Source of the DNA: Octopus bimaculoides
Lineage: Eukaryota
Reading direction: 5' to 3'
DNA: 55,953 nucleotides
NCBI RefSeq assembly: GCF_001194135.2
Contig: NC_068985.1
Coordinates: forward strand, 79,925,276-79,981,228
The notes under the pieces were generated by a model. It did not search any database. It worked only from the letters and a program-made list of their open reading frames with translations, and had not been told where the DNA came from. Positions 27,170-54,908 of the stretch are shown here, piece after piece; within the stretch, counting starts at the first letter, position 1; every line of letters starts with the position of its first letter. The position numbers were made by a program, and so were the translations under genes.

Positions 27170-27432
27170 TCAGAAGCGATTTGATGCTCTGTAATCTGCA
27201 GCCATTATTTCATCATACGGTGGTGGGGGAGGGGCTGAGCTATTTTCATATCTGTCGTATGGTGGTAGATGGGGTTGAATTACAAAATTTGGTCTGGTGA
27301 TGATATTACTTTGTGATCTGTTATTAACTGGTTCTTCCATTCCTTTCTTCCTTTTTGCATGAACTGCCATCAAAACACCAACAATCCCACCAAATATCAA
27401 GAAACATGCAACTGCCACAGACACTACAATAA
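27170..27432 (-). CDS. Cys-rich single-pass receptor-like gene, last exon (TM helix and cytoplasmic tail)
   Basis: cttctttttcag|TT ATT GTA; phase 1; IVVSVAVACFLIFGGIVGVLMAV-HAKRKK...LPPY..YEN..PPPPPYDEI...NRF*. Confidence 0.88.
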
Positions 27433-28094
27433 CTGAAAAAGAAGATGTATATATTGTTGAAATCATAAGAATTTAGAAAATTTGAGAAGGTGAAATAATT
27501 TTTTTTAGGAACAGTGACTCTTGAAGCAAATAATGCTATAAATAATAGTGTGTAAATATTTATTGATTTAATTATTTATAGCGAACAAGTAGAATTTTTA
27601 AAAATCCCTTATTTGTAAATCAAGAAGTTATGAAAGGGAGGGTGTTTTTCTGTAAATCCAAAATTTAAAGTATACTTATGAATTTGCAAAGTAAAAACTC
27701 ATTATTCTACTCAGCACTCAACCTTGGTTACTTAAAATGAGCTCAAGAATAAAATCAATTGCGGCACCACAGTTTTTCTAGTACCAGATTTTATCATGGT
27801 GTCAATGGCAAATTATAAGTTCTAAAAATTTGCATTAAAATAAGTGTGCTTCATTACAAATGGCCACATGTTTCACATTACATTTGCTTGAATAGTCCAT
27901 ACAGTAAAGCATGGCAATTTGTAAAAAAGCTGTTCAATAATAAATAACAAGTATTCAGCTAATCCATGCTAGCAAGAGAACATGGATATAAAATGAAGAA
28001 ATGAATCAGCAGTGTTTCAATACCTCATTCTCATGGCATTCTCACCTATACAAGGATATAAATTGAAAGAAAGTGTTAGAAGGTCATTACGTAC

Positions 28095-28300
28095 TACTAA
28101 ATGTATTGGATACTTTCGGAGGGGAGTCTTCAGTTGTGATTTCTGGTTTGATTGTGACTTTAGTAATATATGAACAGCCGTCTTTGAAGAAAGTGCTTTT
28201 CACACCATGTTCATAGATGTTTCTCATGAACTGATAATCTTTCAAATTACAGACTTTCCTAGTTAAATCCAAACTGCAGTGAATGGTTTCATCCAGAGAA
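28095..28300 (-). CDS. Receptor-like gene, domain 2 exon d plus Thr/Pro stalk
   Basis: ttttttactag|T TCT...AGT A|gtacgt; 206 nt, phase 2 to 1; SLDETIHCSLDLTRKVC...FMRN...DGC. The donor was chosen as the one that keeps phase with the next exon. Confidence 0.8.
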
Positions 28301-30171
28301 CTAGTAAAAAACAAAATAAAAATATGATACATCAATAGTGATCTGATATGAATGTGTGTATGTATGTTTAGTTTTACAAAGCATTTGTCAAACTTGTTAC
28401 AAGTTAGACAAGTATGTTGTCATGCAATTTTAGGCCTTTGTTTATCAGTTTATCAGTTCACATATGCAGAGTGCAAGTGATATTTGAAGACACTTGATTA
28501 TCAGTATATAACTCTCTTCAAACCAATTTTCATTCACACCCCATGACAGATAAAATGTTAACATGATAAATGAAGATATGCAATCATTTTCACCATAAGT
28601 GCAGAACACTGTGATTTAGAAAATACCAACTTTCTAAATGTTGCAAGATCTTTTGTACACAAAGTTCAGATGGAATTGCAAACCTCTGGTAAGAATGTTT
28701 CAACAGTATCAAAGAGAAAAACAAAAAGAAAAACATCTGGACACTCTAAGGACAGCACAATTCATTCAATGGATTCAAAACATTACACAGTGTAACACAA
28801 TTTTTGTCCTAGGATAGCAACTGTTATTTCTTACTTGCTTACCTCTAGAAAGTATGAAAAATGGCTAATATTTCCTTCAAACTTAGCTTTCGTTACATTT
28901 ATTCAAAGCCCAAAAAATCCCTCTCAAAATATGGTTATGATGCTCCCCTACTACTCCTGCTCATGATCAGAAATGCACATATTGTCAGCCACTATGGGAC
29001 ATGCTCAAATGGTTAACATCAAGTAACTGACAAGCAAATATATGGTATTGAGCAGAATATTTGCTATAGTGATAATTCTGCTGAAACTTTCTGAAATGTA
29101 ATGGAAGATAGGTCAGTTTCAAAACGATGTTCTGGTCACAAATGCAAAGTTCAGAGAGAATAGTAGTCATTTCCTTTGATTTCTAGATAGAAGCAAATAG
29201 GAAATAACACTGACCAAAAAAAAAAATTAAAATTTTGTTACACAGCATTTCCAGTGATGATCCTGGAAATTCAATGAGAGCCATCACCAAGAACTTAAGG
29301 ACATTTGATACATGTCAATATGTACTGAAGAGAGACCAATTCATGTCTGCAAAGACATGAAATGGCCTCCGATGGTGATGATAATAATGATATATAGTAT
29401 TGGGATTATTTTTTTAAAATTCTTATAATTTGCTGTTCTTTAACTAATATATATGAATTTGTCAACACGGCATTATTTGAACTGGAGAATAAGGAAGTAG
29501 TTTCCAGCAATCAAAACTTCATCATGGATGATGAAAGTAAAACAAAAATCTGAGAGGAGACAACAATTGTATAGTTTCATAAATTAGTAAATATNNNNNN
29601 NNNNNNNNNNNNNNNNNNNNNNNNNNNNNNNNNNNNNNNNNNNNNNNNNNNNNNNNNNNNNNNNNNNNNNNNNNNNNNNNNNNNNNNNNNNNNNNNNNNN
29701 NNNNNNNNNNNNNNNNNNNNNNNNNNNNNNNNNNNNNNNNNNNNNNNNNNNNNNNNNNNNNNNNNNNNNNNNNNNNNNNNNNNNNNNNNNNNNNNNNNNN
29801 NNNNNNNNNNNNNNNNNNNNNNNNNNNNNNNNNNNNNNNNNNNNNNNNNNNNNNNNNNNNNNNNNNNNNNNNNNNNNNNNNNNNNNNNNNNNNNNNNNNN
29901 NNNNNNNNNNNNNNNNNNNNNNNNNNNNNNNNNNNNNNNNNNNNNNNNNNNNNNNNNNNNNNNNNNNNNNNNNNNNNNNNNNNNNNNNNNNNNNNNNNNN
30001 NNNNNNNNNNNNNNNNNNNNNNNNNNNNNNNNNNNNNNNNNNNNNNNNNNNNNNNNNNNNNNNNNNNNNNNNNNNNNNNNNNNNNNNNNNNNNNNNNNNN
30101 NNNNNNNNNNNNNNNNNNNNNNNNNNNNNNNNNNNNNNNNNNNNNNNNNNNNNNNNNNNNNNNNNNNNNNN

Positions 30172-30204
<33 letters not shown>

Positions 30205-30207
<3 letters not shown>

Positions 30208-30950
30208 CTGTGCTTGAGAAGACTCATTAAGCCAAGTGATGTTGTAGTCATTGCCAGTGTCATGTAAATGGCACCTGTGAAATTGTAGTTGTGGTTGTTG
30301 CAAGTAGCATGATCTTCAAACGTTGGGCCTCATGGAGGCTAGGGATGAGGTGGTGAAGCATGATCATTGAATACTGGGCTTCAAGGAGGTGATGACAATT
30401 GACTGAGACCTTTGATGATATGCTGTGCTAGAGAAGACTCATCAAGCCAAGTGAAATCATAGTTGTCATCATCATCATCATCATCGTCGTCGTTTAACGT
30501 CCGCTTTCCATGCTAGCATGGGTTGGACGATTTGACTGAAGACTGGTGAAACCAGATGGCTACACCAGGCTCCAATCTGATTTGGCAATGTTTCTACAGC
30601 TGGATGCCCTTCCTAATGCCAACCACTCAGAGAGTGTAGTGGGTGCTTTTACATGCCACCGGCACAAAGGCCAGTCAGGCGGTACTGACATGGCACCCAT
30701 GAATCATAGTTGTGACATCCATGAAATCAGAGTTTCAGCCATCGCCAGTGTCATGTAAATGGCACCTGTGCCAGTGGCGCATAAAAAGCACCCATTACAC
30801 TCTTAGAGTGGTTGGTGTTAGGAAGGGCATCCAGCAGTAGAAACCATGCAAAATCAGTCTGGAACCTGGTGCAGCTCTCTAGCTAACCAGTTTTCAATCA
30901 AATCGTCTAACCCATGTTAGTATAGAAAGCAGGCGTTAAATGATGATGAT
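30205..30950 (+). mobile_element. Old RTE 3' end interrupted by a younger opposite-strand copy (30467-30701)
   Basis: The inner copy is flanked by the direct repeat AATCATAGTTGT (30455-30466, 30702-30713). Confidence 0.75.
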
Positions 30951-33524
30951 TATTAGCTATAGTGAATATGCATGATTAGAGCATAGCACCTACACTTGCA
31001 AGAACATGGTTTTGATTCCAAGACCCATAGTGCATTGTGTTCTTGAATAAAACACTCCATTTCACATTGTTCCATTGCTTCAGTTAACTCATCTGTAAAT
31101 GGGCAACTCTGCAAAGGATTGGCATTCTGTTCAAGGGGAATGTCAGCTTGTATGCCTAGCCAGGCGTGTGGCATCATTTGTAAACTACTACATTGTGAGG
31201 AAGCACATTGAGACCAGCAATGTACAACATCTGAAAATCTGGTTGATACAGTGCTAAAGTATTGACATGGAGTATGCTTCATAACCACATAGTTTTGAAT
31301 TGTATCTCACTGCATGGCACCAGGGACAAATGTCTTTTACTGTTGTCTTGGACCAGCCAATACCATGTGAACGGAATTGGTAGAAAGAAATTGTATGGAA
31401 TATATACCATATATATGCATGCATCTGTGTGTGTAGATGCTTACATTCTGTGTCTTTGCATGAAATTGTCTGAAAAAATATAGTGAAGTTATGATGGCAT
31501 TGTTAAATAGTCCTCTATCTCTCTGCTTTCCAAGGCACATAAAGCAGAAATTCCCATAAGCATCCAGCAGTAAAATAATGCTTGTCATAAGTATTCATCC
31601 AACTTAAGCTAGCATGAAAAAAAAATGAATGTAAAATCATAGGCTGAAAGTTTTGATAATAACAAAATAGGTTTGTTAATATTATATAGTCGAGAATACT
31701 TTTGAGGAATATGTGTCTAAATATAATGTATTCAAGACTTTACCATCCGAAACAAATAGTAAATAACCTGATTCATTTTGCTTGTTGATCGTGAGCTAGA
31801 AATATGAGTTATGAGCATAACCAAAGAAAGTTCATTATAAATGTAGCATTATAATTGTAATCATCCTATTCCTTAATTCCAAATCCTAAACATTCAGATC
31901 TAAACCCAGCCCTAAATCCTAATCCTAAACTCTAACTCCAAATCCTATCTGTAAACCTTATGCCCTAACATGAAACTTAAACATAATCCTAAATCTTAAC
32001 CTAAAAAGAAAAAAATTCCAACCAATAATACCAATAACAAATTGTACTAAATTTTATTAAATATCCATCCATCTATCTTTTCCACTCACAACTCCTAGGA
32101 GGTTCATGGGGGAAGAGTCCTCAGGTCCCTCCTCCAGAAGCAAGTGATAAAATATCAGCCCCCATTCTATTCTTTATTATTCATTCATCTTCTCTGCCCC
32201 TTATTCCTGGGAGGGTCATTGGGGTAAAGTCTTCAGGTGCAACCCCCATAGAGTCCTATCAGTACTAACTGTCATTGCACTTTCCAGCTGGATTCCCAAA
32301 CATGATCAACTGAAACTATGGATATCATCCAATCATCTTGTCCTTAGTCTACTCCTAGGCTCAGCTTGAAGAATCCATTTGGCAATTACTTCTTGTAGTA
32401 TTTTAGTCACATGTCCTTAGTCTGTGACCTCTCAATGTGGAGAAGTAGCAGTTCAATCTACAGAGACTCTGTAAAGTATAATGCAAATGCAAAAACAAAA
32501 ATAAATCAGTCTGTTAACTATTTGTTTTGAAAAATTTTCTCTTCCAGTCTGTAAAGCCTAGGTTTCTCTTAAATACATGAGAACAGTATTTCTCAAACAT
32601 TTTTTTTTTTTTTTTTTNNNNNNNNNNTTTTTTTTTTTTTTTTTGCTCATAACATCTTTCTGAATGTAACTTACCTCTTTGGTTCCCTTATGGATGTTAT
32701 TAGCGGGGAAAAAGTATTGCCACTGTCTTTATCATAACTTAAAAGAACAACCATTCATTTGCACATAAAACTGTGTATTAGCAAATTTCTCTGGCCTCTA
32801 CAGTTCCCATTCTTTATCATGTGTCCCCTGAAAGAAGTGGTAAAAATATGGGGCATCAAGCTAAACCCCATTTCAGGTTACCTTTAGGTATTCTGAAATC
32901 CTTACTATTACCCATGTGAGTATTCAGATTTTGATTCCTTATTTTCTTTACACAATTCCCATAAGACTTCTCCGTATCTCTAATTAAGCTAAAATGATAA
33001 ATGCTTATGCTGACATCTCATTCTACATTTATTGTGCAAAACATGTAAAACTTATAAGCTAGTCTGAAAATTTTCCTTTATAGTATCACAAAAAATGTCA
33101 GTTGTAATACAACCATTCATACTAATACAACCATTTCATACAAGCATAATATATACAATGTTTCATCCTAATTGAAGAACAAACTTCGAGGAATTCTTTT
33201 GAAAATGTCTGATCCTTGTTGGAGCTAGGGCACCCTGAATTTTGTCACAGAACCTATATGTGTACTTTTGATAATATATCTCTGCTCATCTCATCCACAA
33301 AACTTATATACATACATGTTTTTAAGAGGCTAATCTGAAACTGTAAAAGGTAAGATAAAATTAACTTCTAGTTACCCACTCACCTGAGTAATTTAAAATT
33401 GATATTATCTTGTCTCCAAGTAACCTGAATACAATATCAAATTACAGTGTGGTCAATCATGTCTAATTTGTAATTGTTACAGCAATTGAAAATCACTAAT
33501 TTAGAGAAATACTAATGAACTTAC

Positions 33525-33642
33525 CGACAAGCCTGCATGCTGGTTGTTGAATTGAGTATCTTCCTTCCTCCTTTAATGAAACAAGCTTTTCGATAATCAG
33601 AAAATGGTGTCTGAGTTAAGCAGTAATTGTGAATGAGGACAA
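33525..33642 (-). CDS. Receptor-like gene, domain 2 exon c
   Basis: catttcatcttgcag|TT GTC...TGT CG|gtaagt; 118 nt, phase 1 to 2; VLIHNYCLTQTPFSDYRKACFIKGGRKILNSTTSMQAC. Confidence 0.85.
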
Positions 33643-33699
33643 CTGCAAGATGAAATGAAGAAATTGGTTTTGTTATGATACAACTAATTCTTTCTTATT

Positions 33700-33903
33700 T
33701 TGGCACAAAGCCAGCAATTTTGAGGTGAGTTAGGGAAGTCAGTTACATCGAACCCCAGTGCTCAACCGGTACTTATTTCATCACCCCTGAAAGGATGAAA
33801 GGCAAAGTGAACCTTGGCAGCATTTGAATTCAGAATGTGAAGGTGGACAAAATGCTCCATAGCAGTTTGTCCAGTGTGCTAATGATTCTGCCAGCTTGCC
33901 ACT
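33700..33903 (-). mobile_element. SINE family C filling most of a 298-nt intron
   Basis: Colinear with 2850-3072. Confidence 0.7.
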
Positions 33904-33940
33904 TTCATAATAATAATAATAATAATATCATATTACTTAC

Positions 33941-34071
33941 CACTTCGATCTTGTTTACAGATGTAGGTTAAAAGTTTGTTATAATAAAAATGTTCGAATA
34001 ACATTAATTTGTTTGTGTGGTGGCATTCTCCTTTTATTCTCTGTAAGCATCTCTGGAATAGTCCTAAATTT
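33941..34071 (-). CDS. Receptor-like gene, domain 2 exon b
   Basis: gtattttcag|A AAT...AGT G|gtaagt; 131 nt, phase 2 to 1; NLGLFQRCLQRIKGECHHTNKLMLFEHFYYNKLLTYICKQDRS; same length as 49969-49839. Confidence 0.85.
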
Positions 34072-34407
34072 CTGAAAATACATGAGCACTAGGAATGTAT
34101 ACTCTATGGAATTATCTTTATTGAGTTTTGCATAGCTATGTACAATTTAATGTGAGTTACACCTGAGCAAACAGACCTACGATCAAAGTTATTCCAGCCA
34201 TGACAATCCTGATGATATTTTTATAAGTTTGTTCAAGAGGATTCTAGGACTACATTGACTGATGCAACCTTTTTCTTTAATGACAACAGGATATGAATAC
34301 AGGATGATTTGGCTGATAAATCTAAGAAGCTGGACAAAACATCATTGAGGCTGCTATGCTAATCAAGGGTGTTCAGTATTATTCCAGGGACCTCCTGACT
34401 GATCATT

Positions 34408-34830
34408 TAAAGTGGAGGAAGTTGTGGAAGAGGGAGACCCCGGAAGACATGGGACAAAGTACTGAATGCTAATCTCAAAACACTGAACCTTACAAAGGAG
34501 ATGACAGAGGCTGAGAAATGTGGTGCATTGCTATACTCAAGAAAACCTGCCCACCACAAAAGAGTTGAGATCCTAAAACCAAGGAGCCACATAACGTGCA
34601 TTGGTGTGGATGCTGGAGCCATGTAAAAAAGCACTCATGATGGTGCTACATAAAAAGCACCCAGTATACTGAAGAGTGGTTGGTGTTCAGAAGAGCATCC
34701 AGCCATGGAAACCAAGCCAAAGCACACTACGGAGCCTGGTGAGGCCTCTGGCCTTGCCAGTTCCTGTCAAGTTGTCCAACCTATGCTAGCATAGAAAATG
34801 GATGTTAAATGTTGTTGCTGATGATGATGA
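34408..34830 (+). mobile_element. RTE LINE 3' end: ORF C-terminus contiguous with family A 3'UTR
   Basis: Frameshifted ...CGRG.PRKTWDKVL...EMTE runs directly into the family A sequence and a GATGATG tail. Confidence 0.75.
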
Positions 34831-35153
34831 TGGATGGGATATGTTGCTGTATCTGTTCTGGTCCTTTGTGTTCTTACAGCAGCACACTTGTGATGACAAC
34901 AGTGCCAAATAGAAATAAACCCACTATCCAAGATCCAGGTTGATAAAGTGGATAAATCTACTAGCTATAAGTTGACAGTTTGCATCCTGTTTAAAACCTA
35001 GATATTTCATTTGCACTGGCTCAAGACACTTAACTGCAAAGAGTACCTAGGCTGTAGTGACAGACAAAAAAACCAAGTTCATACAAGGTCAGAAAGTAAA
35101 AGCAGTGTACATATGAGTATTGTGTAATTGAGAGCATATTGTAAGGAGTGTGA

Positions 35154-35460
35154 AAGCATGCAGTTTAGTGGTTGGGGTAATAAGCTTACAATCACCCGGT
35201 CATGGGTTCAATTTCTGGTGGCGCATTGTTTCCTTTTAGTAAGACAATTTATTTCACATTGCTCCAATCCACTCAGCTGGTAAAAATCGAATCGTACATG
35301 TAATTCAAAGAGCTGGCCTTGTCATGTTGAATCTCCCTGAGAACTATGTTAAGGGTATATGTTTCTGTGGTGGGCTCAGCCACTTGTATGTTAATTTCAT
35401 GAGTAGGCTGTTTCATTGATCAGATCAACTGGAACCCTCGTTGGTGTACCCAATGGGGTA
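35154..35460 (+). mobile_element. tRNA-derived SINE, family D
   Basis: Head GTTTAGTGGTTGGGG, B box GGGTTCAATT, CAATCCACTCAGCTGG domain; partial relative near 52530-52720. Confidence 0.65.
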
Positions 35461-36228
35461 TTTGTTTAAAAAAAAGTGTAGGGAGCATCTCTAAGGTTCA
35501 GCATTATTTTTCAGTAATTTTTTTATTAATATCCAGTCAACCATGAAGTTAAAAAAGACTGAGGTCCACTACTCTATTGTTTTAAAACAAAGAAAGAATA
35601 CAACACATTGCAAAATATAGTCCAAGTTATAGAAAGCTATGGGAGGGCCACAGCTGGAAAGCTTTTGATTATATGTCTGCTGAATCAGTCATGAACTGGA
35701 GATAAATAACAATATAAAAGCATACATGAGGAATACTATAAACTATATTTCATTTACCATGACCTGACAGAAGTCCAAAATACTGGACATTCATACTACT
35801 CCAAGGATATTAAGAATATACCTCATGTGAACAATGGAAACAGTCATACACTTGGTTACCTAGGAGCATACTTACCTCTTGATCACGTAATAGGCACTTA
35901 GTATTGGATCACTGAATAATTTACAAGTGTTGCATTAGCCAGATTGTGACAGAGGTGCCAACATTCACTGCAGTCCAGTTTCAGTTCCAGCAATCAACAT
36001 ACTGAAGTGAATATGAACTTAAAAAAAGACTTTAAAATAAAAAAAAAAAGAATGTGGTAACGACTTAACACACACACACACGCACACACACACACACACA
36101 TACACTCACATGCACGCATGCATGCATGTGTGTATGTGCTTGTGCCAATGTGTGCATGTGTATGTGTGTGCATGTATATATATATATATATATACATACA
36201 TATATACACACATGTATATGCATATGTA

Positions 36229-36276
<48 letters not shown>

Positions 36277-37111
36277 TGTGTGTGTATGTATATATGTGTG
36301 TATACATGTGTGTGCATGGGTGTAGGTGTGTGGGTATGTGTGTGCATGTGTATATATATGTATTTATATATATATGTATATATATATCTACTCCGCGTTT
36401 CGAAGGCAGCGGAGTAGATGGAACAGGGACAACTGACGAAGGGATATACTCTTTATGCTGCATGTCTCGTTTGTTTTTTTCGTTGTTCAAAAAAAGTTCG
36501 TTTTCTGTTTTCGTTTCTCATTGTGTTTAACATTTCTTTTGATGTCCTGTACCCATATATACATGTATATATACATATAGATGTAGGTATGTACATATAT
36601 GTATGGATATATGCATATATCTATATATTATTTATATTATTATATGATCGAATGCCATGCATCCTTTTCCAAGTTTTATATATATGTATATATCATTTAA
36701 TGTTCATTTCCCACACTAGCATGGTTTAGATGGTTTGACAAGTGCTGGTAAGCTAGAGACCTACACCAGTCTCCAGTTATCTGTTTTGGCTTGGTTTCTG
36801 TGGCTGGATTCCCTTCTTAACACCAACCACTCTACAGAGTATATTGGTTGTGATTGACACAGGTGCCTTTTATGTCACCAGCATGGGTACTCTTTACATG
36901 TTACCAGCACAGATGCCTTTTACTTGTCAGCTTTTTATCATAATGGGTGTCAAAAATCACCCTCCTCACAAGCAAATTTAGTGAAGTTACTGGTTTAATT
37001 GTTAATGGCCTGACGAAACTCAAGTTGTGCTGACTTACAGTGTTACCTGTAGCAGACCTCTGATTATCAGATCAATACTATATTTTCTTCTCTCTTTGAA
37101 AACCTGGCAAC

Positions 37112-37178
37112 TTAAATTATCATACATTAAATTATCATACATTAAATTATCATACATTAAATTATCATACATTAAATT
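37112..37178. repeat. Tandem 15-mer TTAAATTATCATACA x4 plus partial unit
   Basis: Four perfect units (37112-37171) read directly. Confidence 0.95.
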
Positions 37179-37207
37179 TTTATCAATAACAGTGTTGTAT
37201 AACTTAC

Positions 37208-37355
37208 TTGCAAACGAAATTTAGTTTTTCTTTATTCAGTTTTGGTAAAGGATTCAACATTAACTGCTTAAGATCTTTGTTAGAGAATCCAATCTGAGAT
37301 GCACAGACATTGCTTTCAGTTTCAACATTATGCAAAGAACATTTGTAATCTTTTC
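37208..37355 (-). CDS. Receptor-like gene, domain 2 exon a
   Basis: tttcctttcatttgcag|GA AAA...TGC AA|gtaagt; 148 nt, phase 1 to 2; KDYKCSLHNVETESNVC...KLNFVC; same length as 54908-54761. Confidence 0.88.
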
Positions 37356-42982: not shown

Positions 42983-43019
<37 letters not shown>

Positions 43020-43609: not shown

Positions 43610-44049
43610 TGATTATCACCTCTTTGAAACTTTGAAGCAGAAATGATGTGGCAAGCTGAGCCATGATGTCCTGTTTTTGTAGGACAATGCACCAACACAC
43701 ACAGTACAATGAAACTCTGTGGAAAATATGCAACTCTGGCTTCGAATTTGTAGACCACCCACCTTACTCTCCTGACTTGGCCCTCTCCAACTATCACCTC
43801 TTTCCACAACTGAAGAAACATCTCAAGGGAACAGAATTTCACTCCAATTTGGGAGTGATCGCTGCTACAGAGACACAGGCCTGGTTGGAGGCTCAACATT
43901 ACGAATTCTTTTACAGGGCTTAGAAAACTGAAGGGCTGCTGCAATATGTGCGAATCTGAGAGGGGCATATATTGAATAAACTCATAATTAACTGATCCTC
44001 CTGTGTTTTCTTTTACTCAAAGCCAGGAACTTTTCAGCACCCCTTCATA
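43610..44049 (+). mobile_element. Mariner 3' fragment with TIR
   Basis: DNAP and HPPYSPDLA motifs; ends AAGCCAGGAACTTTTCAGCACCCCTTCATA. Confidence 0.88.
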
Positions 44050-44072
44050 GTCTAGTATCTCTNNNNNNNNNN

Positions 44073-44133
<61 letters not shown>

Positions 44134-44257
44134 CTTTCTGTCTGCCTGTCTGTCTGTCTCTGTCTCTATCTCTGTCTCTCCGTCTTTTTCTCTTATATAA
44201 AATTTCTTGTATACTCTGTTAAAAGACATAAAGACAGTGTGATAATTTGAAATTTAC

Positions 44258-44400
44258 CTTTGTTGGTGAATTTACATGTTCCTGGGGGCAGAGGCAAAGC
44301 AAGTTCAGTCTCCAGCAATACTTTCATAAAACCTGCTGCCTTTGGACCACACGATCGCTCTATCCAGTTAGCTACACATGTAGTCAACTTATCAATTTTA
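44258..44400 (-). CDS. Receptor-like gene, domain 1 exon d
   Basis: ctttttcatatttcag|T AAA...AAA G|gtaaat; 143 nt, phase 2 to 1; KIDKLTTCVANWIERSCGPKAAGFMKVLL...PGTC. Confidence 0.88.
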
Positions 44401-44644
44401 CTGAAATATGAAAAAGACAAAAATGAACATAACAAAAATCATAATAAAAGTAAAAATGAACAAAAACATCTACATTAAAACTGGCAATGTTCAGCATTGG
44501 AAAAACTGAGTTGGTAGAAATATCAGACAAAGTGCCCTGCAGTATTAAGTTACATCTCTTTGTGTTCTGTGTTCAAATCTTGATGAAGTCGATTTTGATT
44601 TTCATCCTTTTGCAGTAAGTACCAGTCTTATATAAAACTGATGA

Positions 44645-45010
44645 ATGGATGAATGGATGAATGAACACCACCTTCCCAAGATCTGTCTCTACGGTGAACT
44701 GTCTGAAGGAAAACGTCCTCATGGAGCCCCCTTGAGGCGGTACAAGGACCAACTCAAATCAACCTTGAAAAGCACCAACATCGACCCCGCACACTGGGAG
44801 GATATCTTGGCAAACAGACCCCTCTGGAGACACACCATCAAAATGGGTTCAGCGGACTTTGAGAAAGCCTGAGTCGCAAGAGCTGAACTCAAGAGACAGG
44901 AAAGAAAGCAGCGCCTTCTCCTTCCGAAACCAACCCCTTCTATCCCTTGTCCACAATGTCCCCATATGTTTCATGCAACCCTTGGCTTGTGGAGCCATCT
45001 GCGGTTCAAA
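44645..45010 (+). mobile_element. RTE-clade LINE 3' ORF fragment (second family)
   Basis: LPKICLYGELSEGKRPHGAPLRRYKDQLK...WRHTIK...CPQC. Confidence 0.85.
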
Positions 45011-45172
45011 CACCCAGGAAAATGAACTGGATTGCAAGCTCGGAAACACGAGACGCAGCCAACTATATAAAACTCATATTTCTAGATGTGTTTTGAGTAA
45101 CTGCAATCATCCACAGAGTGGTGCACTACTACTAGGGTTTTGTTGTCATCCATTTGTTGCAAATAGCTGATA

Positions 45173-46097
45173 AGTGTGGCTGTGTAGTAAGAAGCTTGCT
45201 TACCAACCACATGGTTCCAGGTTCATTCCCACTGCATGGCACCTTGGGCAAGTGTCTTCTACTAAAGCTTTGGGCCAACCAAAACCTTGTGAGTGGATTT
45301 GGAAAAACAGAAACTGAAAAAAAAACCCATTGTATATATGTGTGNNNNNNNNNNNNNNNNNNNNNNNNNNNNNNNNNNNNNNNNNNNNNNNNNNNNNNNN
45401 NNNNNNNNNNNNNNNNNNNNNNNNNNNNNNNNNNNNNNNNNNNNNNNNNNNNNNNNNNNNNNNNNNNNNNNNNNNNNNNTGTGTGTTTGTGTCTGTGTTT
45501 GTCCCCTCACCATCACTTGACAGCCAATATTGGTATGTTTATGTCCCTGTAATTTAGCAGTTCAACAAAAGAGACCGAAAGAATAAGTACGAGGCTTACA
45601 AAGAATAAGTTCTGGGTTCAATTTCTCTGACTAAAACCCGATAAGGTAATGCTCCAGCATGGACCACAGTCAAATGATTGAAACAAGTTAAAGAATAAAA
45701 GAATAAAAATAATTCTTAAAAGTAAAGGAATTGTTAAATAATGTAAGACATAGGTGCAAGCATGACTGTGTGGTAAGAAGGTTCTGGGTTCAGTCCCACT
45801 GCGTGGCACCTTGGACAAATGTCTTCCACTACAATCTTGGGCCAACCAAGTCCTTGTGGGTGTATTTGGTAGACAGAAACTGAAAGAAGCTTGTTGTATA
45901 TGCATATGTACGTGTGTGTGTGTCTGTGTGTCTGTGTTTGTTCCCCACCACCACTTGACAATTAGTTTTGGTATTTTAGTGGTTCAGTACGAGGCTTTAA
46001 AAAAAGTATTAGAGTCAGTTCATTTGACTAAAAGTTCTTCAAGATGATGCCCCAGCATGGCTGCAGCCTAATGACTGAAGCAGATAAAATATAAAAG
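45173..46097 (+). mobile_element. Two head-to-tail SINE family B copies (about 45173-45708 and 45753-46097)
   Basis: Each has a head, B box, internal microsatellite and GACTGAA 3' end. Confidence 0.8.
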
Positions 46098-46321
46098 ACA
46101 TATCAATATATGTATGCTGAAGAAGGGAGTATACTGAGATGATGTGACCTCTCCACACAGCTCCTGGCATACTCTTATGTAATTTTTCAGAAGTTTGACT
46201 TGTTTTCAATATTTCATTATTGTACTTTGTAGATTTATACACTTCTAACTTCTTAGTTTATGGTGCTCAGTCTCCTAACAATAATACAGTTGCATTAGAC
46301 ACAAGAAAATGTTTGGGCACT

Positions 46322-46647
46322 TGTAAAGTGGCATGTGAAAAGACATTCGAGCGAGATCGTTGCCAGTGCCGCTGGACTGGCTCCTGTGCAGGTGGCACGT
46401 AAAATATACCATTTCGAGTGTGGCCGTTGCCAGTACCGCCTGACTGGCCTTCGTGCTGGTGGCACATAAAAGCACCCACTACACTCTCTGAGTGGTTGGC
46501 GTTAGGAAGGGCATCCAGCTGTAGAAACTCTGCCAAATCAGATTGGAGCCTGGTGTTGCCTTCGGGTTCCACCAGTCCTCAGTCAAATCGTCCAACCCAT
46601 TCTAGCATGGAAAGCGGACGTTAAACGATGATGATGATGATGATGAT
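46322..46647 (+). mobile_element. RTE LINE 3'UTR copy (family A)
   Basis: Ends GGACGTTAAAC(GAT)n. Confidence 0.85.
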
Positions 46648-47868
46648 ATGAAAATAGAAAAAAGTGTGTCATATATGCCAGTAAATGCAGTAATTCAGAG
46701 GTATGCTATGACATCAGCTTTTTCTTTCCACATGAAATAGATACAAAGTCAAGTATCAGCTTATTTAAGCTTCCAGATATATGTCCCATAGTAATAACCT
46801 ATTGATAATTTCATACAAACTAAAAGGTGATGCTTACAGGATCTAGGGTACTAAATAATGGCCTGGACCTGCTTTGGGGTACTAGGATGTGTGTCCTTTG
46901 TGCTCCTCCTATTCCACACACCTGAGAACAAGTTGCAGGTTCATTGCTGGTTGGACCAGTATTGGGTGGAGACTGCAATATATTCTTTGAATGGATCCCT
47001 CTACCTAAGATCCAAATGCATCCCATGTTAACCTACATAATGGACAATGTGGCATGGTTATTCTTTGAAGCATTTTTCATATTCCAACTTCTACTGGTTT
47101 TATTTGTACCAGGTACCAACCTGGTATTTGTATTGGATTTGCAGGTTATTATATAGTCTTGAAATTTATTTCTCAATCATTACCATTATAAAGTTCCAAG
47201 CTAAGGATTAACTTTATGAAATCCTTACACTCCTGAAAACATTTATTTATAAAGTTCTTGGATATTTGAAATTATCCCTAACAGTCAAAAACAGACAACT
47301 CTCAATTAGTTTGACCATTTACCCATTGTCTTGGGAGAAATTCTAGTTTAATTTAATTACAACTTCCTCTTTGTCATACAATAAAAATCATATATTTTTA
47401 AGATAAAAGAAGCTTGTATTTAGTTGTTTGACTTAGTAGAAATATCAGCCAAACTGCCTGCAAATATAATCCTTGGTATCATAAACATAGAAAGACAATG
47501 AAAAATATAGTTCTAAATATCCCCCCAAAAGACATCATGAGTTGTTTTTGTTCCCGATATAGTTTAGTCTCAGGTTAGCTCTGACTGAGTAGACCCCACT
47601 GAACAAGAGCATTCTAGCTATGAGTTTCCCATTGCTTTTAATCCATGTACATGGAGCCCAAGATCACATTGTCTAATGTATCCTTTCCCTGTGAAGGTGA
47701 GTATGATTTGACAGAGATTTAGTTGCTGTTGTTAGCAGGTCATATGATCCTGTTATGATGCTATGAGTCTCTTATTGATTTGGAAGGGTGATCATGTGAT
47801 GTGCTTGCTGGATCAGGATTTACCTTGTGAGAACAACAACTAGTTTTAATGACATTAAGTTAACTTAC

Positions 47869-47965
47869 CTGCATTCATCAACACGTGGTAGAATAATGCT
47901 TTCACAGCTTTTCATGGCAGGGAGTGTTTCAATATATTTCAAACAAGGCTGTACATCAATGTAAG
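47869..47965 (-). CDS. Receptor-like gene, domain 1 exon c
   Basis: ttttacttgtctttag|CT TAC...TGC AG|gtaagt; 97 nt, phase 1 to 2; YIDVQPCLKYIETLPAMKSCESIILPRVDEC. Confidence 0.85.
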
Positions 47966-48074
47966 CTAAAGACAAGTAAAATGGTTGGAAAAAGAACATA
48001 AAGACATGAAATTAATTATTTTTCTTTATTATCATAAAACAATTCATTATTATAACATAATAATGGTTTCTAAG

Positions 48075-48505
48075 TTTGGCACAAGGTCAGCAAGTTCAGG
48101 GGAGGGATAAGTTGATTACATCAACCCCCAGTGCTCAACTGGTACTTATTTTATCAACCCAAAAGGGAAGAAAAGCAAAGTCGACTTTGATGGAATTTGA
48201 ACTCAGAACATAGAGATGGACAAAATGCTACTAAGCATTTTCCTCAGATGCAAATTATTTTGCCCATTCACAGCCTTATAATATAAGCCTTTCTACTATA
48301 GGCACAAGGCATGAAATTTGAGGGGAGGGGTTAAGTCTATAACATCAACCCCAGTACTCCACTAGTACTTAATTTATTGACCCCCAAAAGGATGAAAAGC
48401 AAAGTCGACCTTGGTGGAATTTGAACTTGGAATGTAAGGATGGATGAAATGTTGCTAAGCACTTTGCCCAGCAATGCTAACGATTCTGCTAGTCTGCCGC
48501 CTTAT
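48075..48505 (-). mobile_element. Two tandem SINE family C copies
   Basis: Both contain AAAGTCGAC..GGAATTTGAACT and end near the tRNA-like head. Confidence 0.7.
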
Positions 48506-49097
48506 TACTGTTATAATAAAATAATAATAATAAAATATAATTATATCAAGAGAGTATTGTAGTTCGCTTGAAACATTGTGTATTGTTTGTAAAGAATAAA
48601 AAGTTTTGAATGGTACAACAATGCACTATAATTTAAAAAATGGACTATATACTTGTTGTAATTTAGTTATCTATAGTCTGATGATATTTCGGAATACAAT
48701 TCCTTCTTAGATGGAGTCTCTGCTATAAACTGTTTACTAACGGCTTTTTTTTTTTTTTTTTTTTNNNNNNNNNNNNNNNNNNNNNNNNNNNNNNNNNNNN
48801 NNNNNNNNNNNNNNNNNNNNNNNNNNNNNNNNNNNNNNNNNNNNNNNNNNNNNNNNNNNNNNNNNNNNNNNNNNNNNNNNNNNNNNNNNNNNNNNNNNNN
48901 NNNNNNNNNNNNNNNNNNNNNNNNNNNNNNNNNNNNNNNNNNNNNNNNNNNNNNNNNNNNNNNNNNNNNNNNNNNNNNNNNNNNNNNNNNNNNNNNNNNN
49001 NNNNNNNNNNNNNNNNNNNNNNNNNNNNNNNNNNNNNNNNNNNNNNNNNNNNNNNNNNNNNNGTGGGTGTAGGATTGGTGAGCTGATATTTGCAGAG

Positions 49098-49328
49098 CCG
49101 TTGCCAGTACCCCCTGACTGGCCTTCGTGCTGGTGGCATGTAAAAGCACCCACTACACTCTCAGAGTGGTTGGTGTTAGGAAAGGCATCCAGCTGTAGAA
49201 ACTCTGCCAAATCAGATTGGAGCCTGGTGTAGCCATCTGGTTTCACCAGTCCTCAGTCAAACCGTCCAACCCATGCTAGCATGGAAAGCGGACGTTAAAC
49301 GACGATGATGATGATGATGATGATGATG
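49098..49328 (+). mobile_element. RTE LINE 3'UTR copy (family A)
   Basis: Ends GGACGTTAAACGAC(GAT)n; 5' part in gap. Confidence 0.85.
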
Positions 49329-49334
49329 GTGCTA

Positions 49335-49770
49335 TTTGACTCATCAGAAGGTGATCTTCAGCATGCACTGAATATAGCTTCACTGCTTAATTCTGTAAGG
49401 CAGGGATGGGAATAAATGTTGTAAAGACTGAGGCATTGGTCCTCTCAAGAAAGTCTTCCCAGTGCACTCTGCATGCTAGTGGAACATCACTGAGACAAGT
49501 GGAGAAGTTGAAGAATCTCAGGGATGTATTCAGAAGTAATAGGAATCAGGAGGATGAATTGGATGCGAGAATTGTAGGTGCTGGTAAAATAATGTGTTGG
49601 CTGCAACATTCGATCCCCAGAAAAGAGGTTGGTAAAACAGCCAAACTTGCTATATTCAATTCGATTTTCAGGCCTAATCTCACCTAGGGACATGAATGAA
49701 AGAGTTCAACCACAAATACATGTGGCTGAAATGGGGTTCTTCCTGGGGATCTCTGGTGCAAAGGTGAACC
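49335..49770 (+). mobile_element. RTE (Rex3/Expander-like) RT fragment
   Basis: SSEGDLQHAL...KTEALVLSRK...QVEK...LDARI...IFRPNLT*GHE. Confidence 0.7.
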
Positions 49771-49838
49771 TCCAGCCAGGAGGTTCAATGACTGAAACAA
49801 ATGAAACATAAAAGATGATAAATTAATTATATACTCAC

Positions 49839-49969
49839 TTTGAATCCTTCCATTGCACAGATAATTGAAGGTGTCATGTATGTATTCTAACTTGAGTTGT
49901 ATTTCCCTTTGATGCATAGGACATTCAAGCATTATTAACTGGTAGCACAGCTCAAGTTTATATTTATAT
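49839..49969 (-). CDS. Receptor-like gene, domain 1 exon b
   Basis: gtttcattacag|A TAT...CAA A|gtgagt; 131 nt, phase 2 to 1; YKYKLELCYQLIMLECPMHQREIQLKLEYIHDTFNYLCNGRIQ. Confidence 0.87.
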
Positions 49970-49980
49970 CTGTAATGAAA

Positions 49981-50019
<39 letters not shown>

Positions 50020-50453
50020 TGTAATTGTTGTCATTATTTTCATCGTTTTAACATCTACTCTTCCATGCTTTACATAGATCAGATGTCCTGCAGCCAAACA
50101 TATTTTCACAGAAGACTGGGAATGAACAACACCACTTGTGATATGGTGATGTTCATTTACAATTATCTTGCAATGTCTAGACAGACACACACATACACAC
50201 ACATGCATGCACACATACAAAAACATGCATGCATATACACACATGTACACATGCTTGCACACACACATATTCACACACACACTCACACACATACGTAGGA
50301 TTCCTTCAGCTTCCATTTATTGAATCTACTTTCAAGGCTTTGTTCAGCCCAGGATATAGTAGCAGGCAATTGCTCAAATTGTCATGCAGTGGAACTGAAC
50401 CTCAAACTACATGATAGGGAAGCAAATTTCTTAACCACACAGCCATGCTGATA

Positions 50454-50674
50454 TACGAGGCAGTGCTGAAGAGCTCCTGGCTTAAAGGGTAACTCAAAAG
50501 ACCTGATTGGATGCCCAACATTCCAAGTTCTTTTACAAGGCTCAGAAAATCTGAAGGACCAATGCAATAAGTGTGTGAGTCTGAGAAGGAAATATGTTAA
50601 ATAAAATTATAATTAATTGATCCTCCTGTATTTTCTTTTACCCAAAGCCAGGAACTTTTCAGCACCCCTTCATA
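50454..50674 (+). mobile_element. Internally deleted mariner (MITE) with both TIRs and TA ends
   Basis: Terminal 30-mers match at 24/30; the right half is homologous to 43925-44049. Confidence 0.8.
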
Positions 50675-52864
50675 TAATATTATTATTATCTAATTGATTA
50701 CAGTCATATAAATATGAGCAAAAGACACTCAGTAAAACAGGGGATGCTATGCAATGGTACAATGAAAGTACTGTGATAAAAGCTGATATTGTTCATGAAC
50801 ATTAAAACATTAAACAAAACTGTTTTGGTTTTCTGTTTTCAGATCTGAACCAACAAATTAAATTTTTTTTTTTAATGAGGTGACTTTGGTAACTGGTACA
50901 CAGACATAGATTATTGGTTATACAAAAATTGAGGAATTACAAAATGGATGATTTTATCATACTTTAGAATTGCAAAATCTATGAAATGAGTTAACAAGTG
51001 ACAGAAGATTTTTATTCTATAAAAAAAAAAAACTGGTGAAATGATTCTCAGGCACAACAGAAAGCAAAATTATTGCTGTTTTTTTTTTGTCTTTTCTCAT
51101 TCAGTCAGGACGAAAGGAATGTTCCTGACTGGAAAGAGAGAGATAGGGAGAAAGATATCATCAAACTGGTTTGAATGCTTGCAGCGGCGTGGATTCCACT
51201 ATAGGCAGCCAAGGTACCAGCTAATAGTGTTACTTTGGCAATGGATTGCATCACCCACCTAAGCAGACCATGGTAGAATTTGAGCACAAAGAACTGGAAC
51301 AAGAACTGCAAGTCACATGGTCTGACGTTGTTACAGTTTTACCAATCCATCAACTTAGTACCAAAAGGATAAAAGGCAAATTTCACCTTAGTAGGATTTG
51401 AAATTAAAGCACAGAGAGTCAGAACAAATACCATGAGGCATTTTGTCTGATGCTCTAACTGACCAGCCAATTTGCAGCAGTAGCCATTTATATTAGAATG
51501 TAAATTTTAGGAAATAGAGTACAAATGATTGCAGTGCTGGAACTCTAGCTTCTCTTCCTTCCCTACCAGAAAATAAATGAAAACAATTAAAAAAAAAACA
51601 AAAAAACTTATGGCTTATTTCTCAACAAATGTTAAAAGGACAAACAACTGGAGATGCTGAATGTAGCAAACATATTCAAGAAGAATATTGTCCATAACAT
51701 TCATTCTCTTTCAAATCCTCATGAAAATCACAATGCTATTGTGGACTCAATCAGATGAAACATGATAAATCAATGATCAGAGCAGCATATAAACCAATCT
51801 AGAAATTTAGTAAGGTTTCTAACTGTAAAGCTATAAAGGTAAATCCATAGTTAAAGGAAAATCTAAACAAAGAATACTCTATGGACACAGCATGGCCAAC
51901 TGACTAAGAAACTCACTTTGCAATTATCAGGTCCAAGGTCCAATTCCACTGCATGGTACCTTGGACAAGTGTCATTTACCATAGCCCAAGGGTCAGTTGT
52001 GAGTGAAATTGTGTAGATTAGAACTTGTCCTGGGTATCACTTTAATGTAGTAGTGAGGTTTGGTGTGAGGCTCAGGAGTTCCAGGTTTTTGAGGAGCGTG
52101 GAACCACCTCTTAGCTACTATTCTTCACAAGTGGCACCTATTTGGGTCCCACCTATGGGTTAATTAGCATATTATAGCTTGCCTACCTATGCATGTAAAG
52201 ACTGAATCTAGCAGACTCTGCACAAGGAACCTACATGGTTCAATGCAGTGGAAAGCAACAACAGCAGCAATGCATTGTAGAGTGTAGAGAGCAAGAGGAG
52301 GCAAGTAAGAAGACATCTTGGTAATCCACTGCTTCTGTCGCCATCCATAGTTGTTTTGACCTTATTTTGTCACTGGATTGAAGCTGGTTACAGACGAGAG
52401 AGAGAGAGAGAAAGAAAGAGAAAGAGTGAGGTTGAAGATGCACAGCTCTTCTTCAGTCATCTTCCTCAGTCATCTCTAAGGATGGTTGATAGTCCTCACC
52501 ACTTCGATGGACAAACATGAGATTGAAACTGTATGGAATGTAATGTAATGTTGGATGAAATGCATCTGTAATTCAAAGCCTTGTTATTCAGCCACAATGA
52601 TCTTTATTGAAGATTACATTGATGGTATCTGTGTCTGAGAAATACTCAGCCACTTATATGCTAATTCAATGAGCAGCTAATTCAGTTGATCAAGCAACAA
52701 GAAAAATCATCAAAACTGACAGAGACCCTTTTAATTTCATAAACTGAATGTTCAAAATAAGAGACTATATTTGTTCTCCATCTATATAATTATCTGCTTG
52801 TTTGTTTGCCCATTATACTTTAGTTGGTTAGAGAGTGAGTGAGAGGTGGAGTAAAAGTGTGTAT

Positions 52865-52906
<42 letters not shown>

Positions 52907-52916
52907 NNNNNNNNNN

Positions 52917-52956
<40 letters not shown>

Positions 52957-54042
52957 GAGAGAGGAGTGTGAGTAGAAAAGAAAGAAGTGAGGAAGAAGTA
53001 GAGAAAGAGGTATAATAAGGCCAAATGCATCATGTGGTCAGTTGAAGGGAGAAGCGAAGAGCAAGACAAAAAAAAAGAGAGTGAGAGAGAGAAAAGTGCT
53101 AATGACGTGCTGTTAGGTGGGGAGGGAAAGGTAAAGAGAAAGAGATATGTTTAGGATACAATATTTAGCAGAAGGTAATGTTCTGGTGGTGAAGTTAAAG
53201 AATGGCAGGTAAAAAAGAGATGGGCAGGAGAGTTAGCAGAAGAGAGAGGTGAAGAGAAAGAGAGAAATGTTAAAGACATGAAGACAGGAATTACATGATT
53301 AAAAAGCTTGCTGAAGAGGGAGAGAGAAAGAGAGAAATATTAAGTGCTTAGTAGAGGGAAATTTTAAAATTTAATATATTATTGTGAATGGAAGTGAAAT
53401 ACTTAGCAAAATAAAAATAAAAATGCAACATCCTTTCTTTCTTAAATAGCTTCTCTTAATCTTTTATGTTCTGTAGAATTTCTACGGGTCCTACTAGTAG
53501 TTTTAAATGTATTAAAACTAACTTAACTGTTGGTCTTTCAAACAGCTGGCACCTAACAATAATTTATTTCCAGAATATTTCTACATTTTTATACCTACAA
53601 TTGTACATCTACTTAGAGGATTTCTTAGCTCCTGAGACAAAAAAAGAAAAAAAGAAAGAGAAAAAGAAAGACAGAGAGTAACAAGAAAAAGAGAGACAGT
53701 GTGTGTGTGTGTGTATGTATATTCATAGAGAAATGCTTGGAATTTTTACTCATAGTTGCCAAACAACTCAACTGTTTTTAGTTAACATGTTTTACACTCC
53801 TTGAAATAATTATGTTAAAACTAACTCAACATATGAGAAAATGCTTTACTTGAGTGGAAAGCAAACTCAGCCAAAATTGTGCAACAATTGTAATATTTTC
53901 CACACAGAAACAGGCTTAAGCTGGCAGATACACTGAGAGTTGAATATTATTTCAAATCTAGTGAAGGATCAATTTTGTCATTCATCCTCCTGGACAAGCA
54001 TCCCATTCAATGCAGACTGTTTTATACTTTCAGGTTTTAAAA

Positions 54043-54372
54043 CAGGCGTTCTCATCCATATCTTATCTATGGGCCCCTTTGATTACTATTTTATTCTTGT
54101 TGACTCCCAGAGCCATTCGATGTTTAAGAACTAGTTCTATAATAACTTCCTTCAAAATTCTTATTTTGCTTTTCACACTTTAACTTGTGTCAGTTGAACT
54201 ATGTAAAATGTTAGAGAAAGAGACCTAGCTGTTTTTTACAATACATACATCTTAAGCAAAATTTTTTCTGGGGCCCTGAAAATACTATTTTGGACCCCTA
54301 AAAATCTCATATGGACCCTCAGGGGCCATATGGACCCTCAGGGGCCATATGAACCCCGATTGAGATCCACTG
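54043..54372. mobile_element. hAT MITE with perfect 8-bp TSD
   Basis: CAGGCGTTCTCA...TGAGATCCACTG; TTTTAAAA at 54035-54042 and 54373-54380; internal 19-bp tandem duplication. Confidence 0.8.
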
Positions 54373-54760
54373 TTTTAAAATATCAAGTTCCAGTCTAATG
54401 AATCTGGATACTTCTGAGGTAATTAAGAAAGTGAAAGTAAAACAGCTTTGCATTGAATGGGATGTTTGTCCATCACAGTAATAAACTCTAATTGCTGCTA
54501 TGAGTCAGACAAGTCAGACTGTAGCAATGTGAAATGAAGTGCCTTGCTCAAGGACACAATGCACTGCCTGGTACCAGAATTGAACTTGTTATCTAATGAT
54601 CATGAGCCCAGCACCCTACACTAGGCCACAATACCTTCATTTAAAAGTTTGAGAGTTATTAAAATTGATAATCTTTGACAGTCACTTACAAATATCTCCT
54701 TTATCCTGTAGTGGACTATAAATATTCTGATAAGAAAATAACTTCAAAAAATTTAAGTAC

Positions 54761-54908
54761 CTGCAAATGTTCACCATATCAGATGCCATCCATGAATTCA
54801 CTGTCTTGGTTATCTGGGAATTAATGTCGAAGTGTGTTAACTGTAACAGACTCTCACATTCTTGGATTCTCATTGTCTGATATTCCTTGTTACATTGCCC
54901 TTGGACAC
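54761..54908 (-). CDS. Receptor-like gene, domain 1 exon a (first exon seen; signal-peptide exon missing)
   Basis: ttcatgtttctcttaaag|GT GTC...TGC AG|gtactt; 148 nt, phase 1 to 2; VQGQCNKEYQTMRIQEC...MVNIC; xVQG-Q resembles a signal-peptidase site. Confidence 0.87.

Follow-up and report, generated by a model that had tools for sequence, protein, structure and literature searches.

LOC106876533 of Octopus bimaculoides encodes a predicted type I membrane protein with divergent tandem CPG4/DUF19-like domains and a PY-motif tail

We analysed a stretch of 55,953 nucleotides (nt) of the Octopus bimaculoides genome (RefSeq GCF_001194135.2, contig NC_068985.1, forward-strand positions 79,925,276 to 79,981,228), hereafter called the window, in whose own coordinates features are given. 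It is AT-rich (37% GC), with many microsatellites and 15 runs of N. On its minus strand lies the body (coding exons 2-10) of LOC106876533, a gene that encodes a protein of 481 amino acids (aa). Nine minus-strand exons that span 54908 to 27170 were spliced into one stop-free product, which matches XP_014780606.1 ('uncharacterized protein LOC106876533 isoform X1', O. bimaculoides; UniProt A0A0L8IAX8) over residues 22-481 with 100% identity. RefSeq models three isoforms of the gene, and the two others differ from X1 in the first exon only. Orthologues are found in O. sinensis (XP_029637192.1, 88% identity) and O. vulgaris (CAI9722438.1). A preliminary description of this DNA had presented the gene as 'hidden' and as an 'orphan'. 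The first term does not hold, as the gene with its three isoforms is already in RefSeq and UniProt and has orthologues in two Octopus species, and the second is contradicted by at least two Octopus paralogues (LOC106879919 and LOC106871567) and by remote homologues across the protostomes. A literature search on the gene and protein identifiers returned no paper.

The exon model (Table 1) was rebuilt without the coordinates of the preliminary description, from stop-free, cysteine-bearing segments of the minus strand and from AG...GT-bounded pieces of the lengths that it had quoted; the remaining edges were set by eye. At each acceptor the AG is preceded by a polypyrimidine tract, and GT is used at every donor, six times within GTAAG or GTGAG. 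The spliced product comprises 460 residues and a split first (Ser) codon, and it reproduces the nine exons, GT-AG boundaries, alternating phases (1-2-1-2-1-2-1-2-1) and length of about 461 aa that had been described. All nine exons were placed, and a tblastn search found no second copy of the gene in the window. The O. sinensis orthologue also encodes 481 aa; its nine corresponding exons match those of O. bimaculoides in length, and the splice sites are conserved. As had been predicted, the signal-peptide exon lies beyond the window: neither this exon nor the alternative first exons were found inside it. In O. sinensis the signal-peptide exon is located 17.6 kb upstream of E1, and in O. bimaculoides its position is beyond a 2,367-nt gap that abuts the upstream window end (55953).

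Table 1. Coordinates of the exons of LOC106876533 in the window and of short motifs in the last exon (D1 and D2, first and second ectodomain repeat; Cys, cysteines numbered within each repeat; TM, transmembrane).
Feature	Position	Strand	Length and content
E1	54761..54908	-	148 nt; start of D1, Cys 1-3; first 2 nt finish a Ser codon begun in the signal-peptide exon outside the window
E2	49839..49969	-	131 nt; D1 Cys 4-6; same length and splice sites in O. sinensis
E3	47869..47965	-	97 nt; D1 Cys 7-9; same length and splice sites in O. sinensis
E4	44258..44400	-	143 nt; D1 Cys 10-12 with family motif SCGPKAAGFM, and linker
E5	37208..37355	-	148 nt; D2 Cys 1-3
E6	33941..34071	-	131 nt; D2 Cys 4-6
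E7	33525..33642	-	118 nt; D2 Cys 7-9; 7-codon insert relative to E3
E8	28095..28300	-	206 nt; D2 Cys 10-12, then a 20-aa Thr/Pro/Ser stalk (28096-28155)
E9	27170..27432	-	263 nt including TGA stop; TM helix, KRKK stop-transfer, 57-aa cytoplasmic tail
GGIVG (GxxxG) in TM helix	27377..27391	-	small-xxx-small motif
PY motif 1, LPPY (residues 450-453)	27257..27268	-	kept in three Octopus species; aligns with LPPQY/HPPY of the paralogue
PY motif 2, PPPY (residues 464-467)	27206..27226	-	PPPYDEI, then MA; overlaps YDEI (YxxPhi)

Nine of the assembly gaps lie within the gene and all of these are intronic, the closest at 186 nt from an exon edge and the others at 777 nt or more. The chromosome-level O. 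bimaculoides assembly (GCA_001194135.2, CM046605.1, approximately 79.94-80.00 Mb) is base-for-base the same as the window, every gap included, and therefore the gaps cannot be closed from it. The eight corresponding introns of O. sinensis are free of N. Since the nine exons are also of equal length in the two species, no exon is concealed in a gap and the reading frame is continuous. Intron sizes differ between the species, with 6.9 kb in O. bimaculoides against 1.8 kb in O. sinensis for intron 4 and 5.2 against 1.9 kb for intron 7, and these differences largely stem from repeat insertions. Most of the 15 gaps in the window have (TA)n, (CA)n or (GA)n microsatellites at their edges, a probable cause of the breaks in the assembly.

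The predicted ectodomain consists of two repeats of 12 cysteines each. Cysteine spacing is 11,30,8,7,21,12,12,10,8,8,24 in D1 and, after a linker of 10 residues, 11,30,8,7,21,12,12,17,8,8,24 in D2. Ten of the 11 intervals are equal and the remaining one differs by a 7-residue insert. This is in exact agreement with the tandem 2 x 12-Cys ectodomain, the spacing and the paired exon lengths (148/148, 131/131 and 97/118, the last with a 7-codon insert) of the preliminary description, and the Thr/Pro stalk, the transmembrane (TM) helix with GGIVG and the KRKK stop-transfer of a single-pass protein are likewise all present. The two repeats share 16-17% identity overall and approximately 10% when cysteines are excluded (pairwise BLASTP E = 1e-4). 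D1 is exactly 519 nt long, or 173 whole codons, and the repeat unit thus keeps the reading frame. The ectodomain has a single N-glycosylation sequon (NST, 33545-33553, minus strand), located in E7 within the 7-codon insert of D2, and D2 may therefore have gained a glycan after the duplication that D1 lacks. The whole 460-aa product contains no Ser-Gly dipeptide for glycosaminoglycan attachment.

Searches with the native 460-aa product returned nothing at E <= 10, either against Pfam or against PDB sequences. D1 and D2 from two Octopus species were combined into a profile (the octopus profile), with which 1.84 billion representative proteins were searched exhaustively. This gave 41 matches at E <= 1e-3, with a best value of 2.3e-18. 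The relatives come from molluscs, annelids, nematodes and insects. Named matches are the Octopus paralogues and proteins from the limpet Patella ('DUF19 domain-containing' according to UniProt), Mytilus (1,127 aa, also bearing Fz and EGF domains), the oyster Saccostrea, the snail Gigantopelta, the tubeworm Lamellibrachia, a nematode and an aphid, and many of the others are unnamed transcript assemblies, which we refer to by our own numbers (P0006 and so on) where needed. A Pfam scan of the 41 matches gave CPG4 in 23 (at E < 0.01), DUF19 in 12, DUF1397 in 9, RGM_N in 5 and NRN1 in 4. P0018 is a false positive (WD40). P0037 and P0038, which have weak multi-stretch matches only and were not individually checked against Pfam, look like false positives too. 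These three were excluded from the domain alignment together with P0022, for which there was a short match only, and 35 sequences were aligned. All 12 cysteine columns match up in this alignment, both D1 and D2 included. Shared motifs are Y-x-C-x2-G after Cys 6 and C-G-x2-A at Cys 11, the latter within SCGPKAAGFM in octopus D1. With a profile from which the target was left out, the score is 84 bits for target D1 and 83 bits for target D2.

The link to the Pfam families is made through the relatives and through consensus sequences. The gathering cut-offs are 23.2 bits for DUF19 (PF01579), an entry defined by 12 cysteines, and 32.7 bits for CPG4 (PF15481). Native D1 has DUF19 as its sole Pfam match (12.7 bits, E = 0.11, profile positions 1-142 of 157), and native D2 matches neither family. 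The consensus of the close clade scores 23.8 bits on DUF19 and 26.2 bits on CPG4, and that of the whole family 26.5 and 35.4 bits; the octopus paralogues score 20-21 bits on CPG4. P0014 and P0015 each pass the DUF19 cut-off themselves, and P0015, with 38.6 bits on DUF19, is matched by the octopus profile at E = 2.4e-6. A word-indexed search with the 35-sequence alignment yielded 348 candidates and returned one protein, which added nothing. Profile searches thus bear out the resemblance to DUF19/CPG4 domains that had been raised tentatively, and judged from its sequence relatives the tandem ectodomain is homologous to the CPG4/DUF19 superfamily, with D1 and D2 too divergent for the Pfam models to call.

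Structure prediction with AlphaFold2, using octopus D2 and the family alignment, gave an all-alpha model of eight helices (predicted local distance difference test score, pLDDT, 86.6; predicted template modelling score, pTM, 0.80). A single-sequence prediction for the O. sinensis orthologue was unusable (pLDDT 44). When the D2 model was compared with 350,542 PDB chains in Foldseek, the best match had E = 0.49 and template modelling scores were at most 0.28, with generic helical bundles and designed proteins only. The PDB profile search gave nothing below E = 0.17, with RGM at E = 0.99. As modelled, the eight-helix fold has no solved structural relative. Readings of the domain as GFR-alpha, RGM, Frizzled-CRD or saposin-like were dropped, since the Foldseek and PDB profile searches did not support them. 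Similarity to RGM_N and NRN1 is absent from the native protein and appears as sub-threshold matches in some relatives only.

The TM helix (IIVVSVAVACFLIFGGIVGVLMAVHA) spans residues 395-420, has a mean hydropathy of 2.8 and is followed by KRKK. RefSeq isoform X1 has a hydrophobic N-terminus (residues 3-24), encoded by the first exon outside the window. The protein is therefore predicted to be a type I single-pass membrane protein. The small-xxx-small motif of the helix reads SGIVG in the O. sinensis orthologue, GAIVG in P0006 and P0008, GAIIG in P0007 and GITVG in P0009. The cytoplasmic tail contains two PY motifs, LPPY and PPPY, and the second overlaps the putative sorting signal YDEI; LPPY, PPPY and YDEI are kept in three Octopus species. 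PPxY and LPxY motifs are ligands of group-I WW domains, and PPxY also binds WW domains of the YAP type. The C-terminal PPPPYDEIMAA aligns with PPPSYEQVMAE of LOC106871567, of P0036 and of transcript-derived P0028, and P0012 and P0026 bear PY motifs as well. In a hydropathy survey of the profile matches, 11 carry a tail behind a TM helix, and a C-terminal hydrophobic end of the kind seen with a glycosylphosphatidylinositol (GPI) anchor is present in 14; the others look secreted. Membrane tethering is, on these predictions, a trait of the family, and the target appears to belong to a molluscan subfamily in which a CPG4/DUF19 domain is followed by a TM helix and by a tail that bears a pair of PY motifs.

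Within O. bimaculoides, the paralogue LOC106871567 (UniProt A0A0L8HCJ5, 'Chondroitin proteoglycan 4 domain-containing protein') combines a single domain with a TM helix and a long tail and is located on the same chromosome at a distance of 30 Mb. It is conserved in cephalopods (63% identity in Argonauta hians, 43-44% in two transcript clusters), while the target is seen in Octopus only. BLASTP of the target against this paralogue (P0065) gave collinear alignments of D2 (2e-6), D1 (5e-6) and the C-terminal tail (0.028). Intron positions of LOC106871567 were read from the in-frame exon translations. They fall in the codons that directly follow Cys 3 and Cys 9 and five residues past Cys 6 and Cys 12, and the same four positions recur in each repeat of the target. 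The shared intron positions indicate that a four-exon cassette was duplicated in tandem and in frame to give the target ectodomain. By this comparison of gene structures, the target is derived through cassette duplication from a single-domain ancestor that resembled LOC106871567. The two proteins are alike in ectodomain type, intron positions, a TM helix with basic residues behind it, and a tail that has one PY motif further upstream and PPPxY[DE]x[IV]MA close to the C-terminus, but LOC106871567 has one domain instead of two, lacks the stalk, has a longer, Ala/Thr-rich tail and occurs across the cephalopods.

A different combination is found in LOC106879919 / LOC115232070 and in the transcript-derived P0006 and P0007. 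Like the target, they carry two tandem family domains and a TM helix, which in their case opens with GAIVG or GAIIG, but their tails are short and without PY motifs, identity is approximately 20%, and they form a separate paralogous lineage. Compared with DUF19/CPG4 proteins at large (the C. elegans DUF19 family and CPG-4), the target shares the domain size of approximately 160-175 aa, the 12 aligned cysteines, the predicted all-alpha fold, the secretory pathway and the motifs mentioned above. It differs from them in its native domains that score below the cut-offs, their tandem arrangement, the TM helix and PY tail, and the lack of glycosaminoglycan attachment sites. Nematode DUF19 proteins are small (140-220 aa), secreted and single-domain; 51 C. 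elegans genes encode such small secreted proteins and 14 of these are induced on infection (PMC3534327).

Comparison of O. bimaculoides with O. sinensis gives dS 0.082, dN 0.058 and omega (dN/dS) 0.70. Identity is 94.0% in exons, with no indel in 1385 nt, and 89.4% in introns, where gap openings number 8.8 per kb. At the intron rate 12.2 exonic indels would be expected, and the probability of finding none is 5e-6. In a simulation in which the 83 observed substitutions were scattered neutrally, the absence of any stop together with the retention of all 24 ectodomain cysteines had a probability of 9.5e-4. None of the 16 splice sites is disrupted in either species. This pattern of sequence change is that of a maintained coding gene with fast-changing surface residues, and the target is apparently an Octopus-restricted, fast-evolving member of its family.

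We consider it reasonably probable that the reading as a whole is correct, namely that LOC106876533 encodes a divergent tandem CPG4/DUF19 type I protein, cassette-duplicated, which acts as a trafficking receptor or adaptor through its PY tail. The rigid helical ectodomain would bind an extracellular partner and the TM helices could self-associate through GxxxG. LPPY and PPPY would recruit proteins with group-I WW domains, either HECT ligases of the Nedd4 family or proteins of the Yorkie/YAP type, as suggested by what is known of PPxY/LPxY motifs and of adaptors that carry them. YDEI would serve as a sorting signal, and the tail would also recruit AP-2. Together, the PY motifs and YDEI may cause the protein and its bound cargo to be endocytosed in a ubiquitin-dependent manner and sorted to lysosomes. 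There is precedent for single-pass PY-motif adaptors that recruit Nedd4 ligases (PMC12101832, PMC5578492), and we infer by analogy that the target would act in the manner of Commissureless or PRRG4. Commissureless, PRRG4 and Ndfip-type adaptors are, like the target, short membrane proteins with cytoplasmic LPxY/PPxY motifs, and theirs serve to recruit ligases of the Nedd4 family and to steer sorting in endosomes (PMC12101832, PMC5578492). The target has no sequence or ectodomain relationship to them, however, so that the analogy is a functional one and WW binding by the octopus protein is putative. The 'receptor or adhesion molecule' of the preliminary description is likewise a label that we infer for the target. 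A broader proposal, which we put forward tentatively and hold to be possible rather than probable, is that the target represents an undescribed class of mollusc or cephalopod single-pass receptors in which a CPG4/DUF19 ectodomain, a GxxxG TM helix and a PPPxY[DE]x[IV]MA tail that recruits WW ubiquitin ligases are combined, with LOC106876533 as an Octopus-specific, fast-evolving duplicated member.

Several results weigh against the trafficking reading or parts of it. Firstly, native D1, D2 and the whole protein stay below all Pfam gathering scores, so superfamily membership rests on transitive and profile evidence. Secondly, the literature gives no function for any CPG4/DUF19 domain and has catalogue mentions only, which makes the role of the ectodomain a guess. 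Thirdly, the alignment of the tail to LOC106871567 is weak by itself (pairwise E = 0.028). Furthermore, omega is not significantly below 1 (Fisher p = 0.16), and hence substitution rates alone show little purifying selection. The earlier statement of selection on the disulfide scaffold holds at depth; between Octopus species, however, the dN/dS of about 0.7 is not significantly lower than 1. The word-indexed search found no orthologue of the target outside Octopus, though proteins of Argonauta are in the database. Lastly, the 90%-identity cluster of the target consists of genome-derived models only, with zero members from transcript assemblies (Logan); in the cluster of its relative P0028 one member was seen on 136 transcript contigs. 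The absence of transcript members may reflect expression at a low level or in few tissues.

A signalling co-receptor, although unlikely in our view, has some points in its favour. On this reading the role of the ectodomain would be to trap a soluble ligand in the way of the GPI-anchored proteins neuritin, RGM and GFR-alpha, and that of the PY motifs to provide the coupling to Yorkie/YAP or a different WW-domain signalling protein. This would agree with the weak NRN1 and RGM_N matches in 4 and 5 of the 41 relatives, with RGM as a non-significant PDB profile match (E = 0.99), with the GPI-anchored appearance of many relatives and with the established binding of PPxY to YAP-type WW domains, also for PRRG proteins (PMC5578492). 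Every one of the NRN1 and RGM_N matches is below its cut-off, however, and Foldseek found no similarity to RGM or GFR-alpha structures. Since PPPY overlaps the YxxPhi sorting signal, trafficking is favoured over a signalling co-receptor.

It seems rather improbable that LOC106876533 is a recent duplicate that drifts under relaxed constraint, with weak or no expression, and is becoming a pseudogene. Such drift would account for a dN/dS of 0.70 that is not significantly lower than 1, for omega above 1 in the stalk and TM segment (at few sites), for the occurrence of the gene in the genus Octopus only and for a protein cluster without transcript-derived members. It is difficult to reconcile with zero exonic indels (P = 5e-6), the absence of stops and of cysteine losses (P of about 1e-3), 16 of 16 splice sites intact in both species, PY and YxxPhi tail motifs kept in three species and the three isoforms modelled by RefSeq.

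Very little speaks for a true orphan in the sense of a receptor specific to the lineage that has no relatives and a novel cysteine-rich fold. The native protein does lack Pfam and PDB sequence matches, the word-indexed search yielded Octopus orthologues only, and Foldseek found no solved structure that resembles the model; but there are 41 significant profile matches, mostly with CPG4, DUF19 or DUF1397 signals, two octopus paralogues, 12 cysteine columns and motifs that align across phyla, and a target-free profile that recovers the target at 83-84 bits. Equally implausible is a chondroitin-bearing matrix or proteoglycan core protein like C. elegans CPG-4, with which the target shares its domain superfamily: the lack of a Ser-Gly site argues that it is not such a core protein, and it has a single ectodomain N-glycosylation sequon, a clear TM helix and a cytoplasmic tail.

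Beside the exons of LOC106876533 the window contains part of a neighbouring gene and several repeats. A segment of open reading frame (ORF) at 21760-22065 (plus strand) carries a C-terminal RF-1 motif (IRTYNFNQDRITDHR; Pfam RF-1 E = 1e-7). It is an exon of the convergent neighbour gene, predicted in the chromosome assembly to lie downstream of the target and to encode a 457-aa PCRF + RF-1 peptide-chain release factor, probably mitochondrial. The region 17166-19650 (mostly minus strand) is a remnant of a retrotransposon of the long interspersed nuclear element (LINE) type, in which the ORF at 19090-19650 (minus) matches Exo_endo_phos with 30 bits. ORFs at 18574-19065 and 17718-18029 (both minus) have no Pfam match and look like parts of the same element. 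Two copies of one piece are indicated by the ORFs at 17166-17585 (plus) and 11368-11700 (minus), since both contain the conserved '...YLGDQVSSGGGC...IAARIRIAWAKFREL'. In intron 4 of LOC106876533 there is a mariner/Tc1-like transposase fragment (43663-43923, plus strand; PPYSPDLALSNYHLFPQLKKHLKG) with a weak Pfam DDE_3 match (E = 0.028). A repeat that resembles short interspersed nuclear elements (SINE-like), with ORFs that start MKPDGYTRLQSDLAEFLQLDALPNANHSESVVGAF..., is present on either strand at 30546-30758, 46267-46572, 48737-49246, 10701-10940, 21242-21628 and 25171-25497, and the copies at 46331-46633 and 21387-21689 are 93% identical. Another short repeat, which translates as ...CPRCHAVGLNPEPCGW..., is dispersed in the introns. 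At 988-1539 (minus) an ATG-initiated ORF of 183 aa has several hydrophobic, TM-like segments and no Pfam match; it could be the gene of a small multi-pass membrane protein or a chance ORF. No match to a tRNA or an Rfam family was found anywhere in the window.

The gene catalogue of O. bimaculoides gains nothing from this analysis, as LOC106876533 was already in RefSeq, though without a name, domain or function. What the analysis contributes is that an octopus protein known as uncharacterized and devoid of domains is placed in the CPG4/DUF19 superfamily, and that its origin is traced to duplication of a four-exon cassette from a single-domain paralogue type that occurs throughout the cephalopods. 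If the proposed receptor class exists, LOC106876533 could be adapted to a ligand particular to its lineage; immunity, chemotactile sensing and reproduction are conceivable settings. The conserved PY-motif tail offers a first testable functional handle on the membrane-anchored members of a large, functionally dark protostome family, and if this tail does recruit Nedd4-type ligases, these proteins would give access to the biology of CPG4/DUF19 domains at large.

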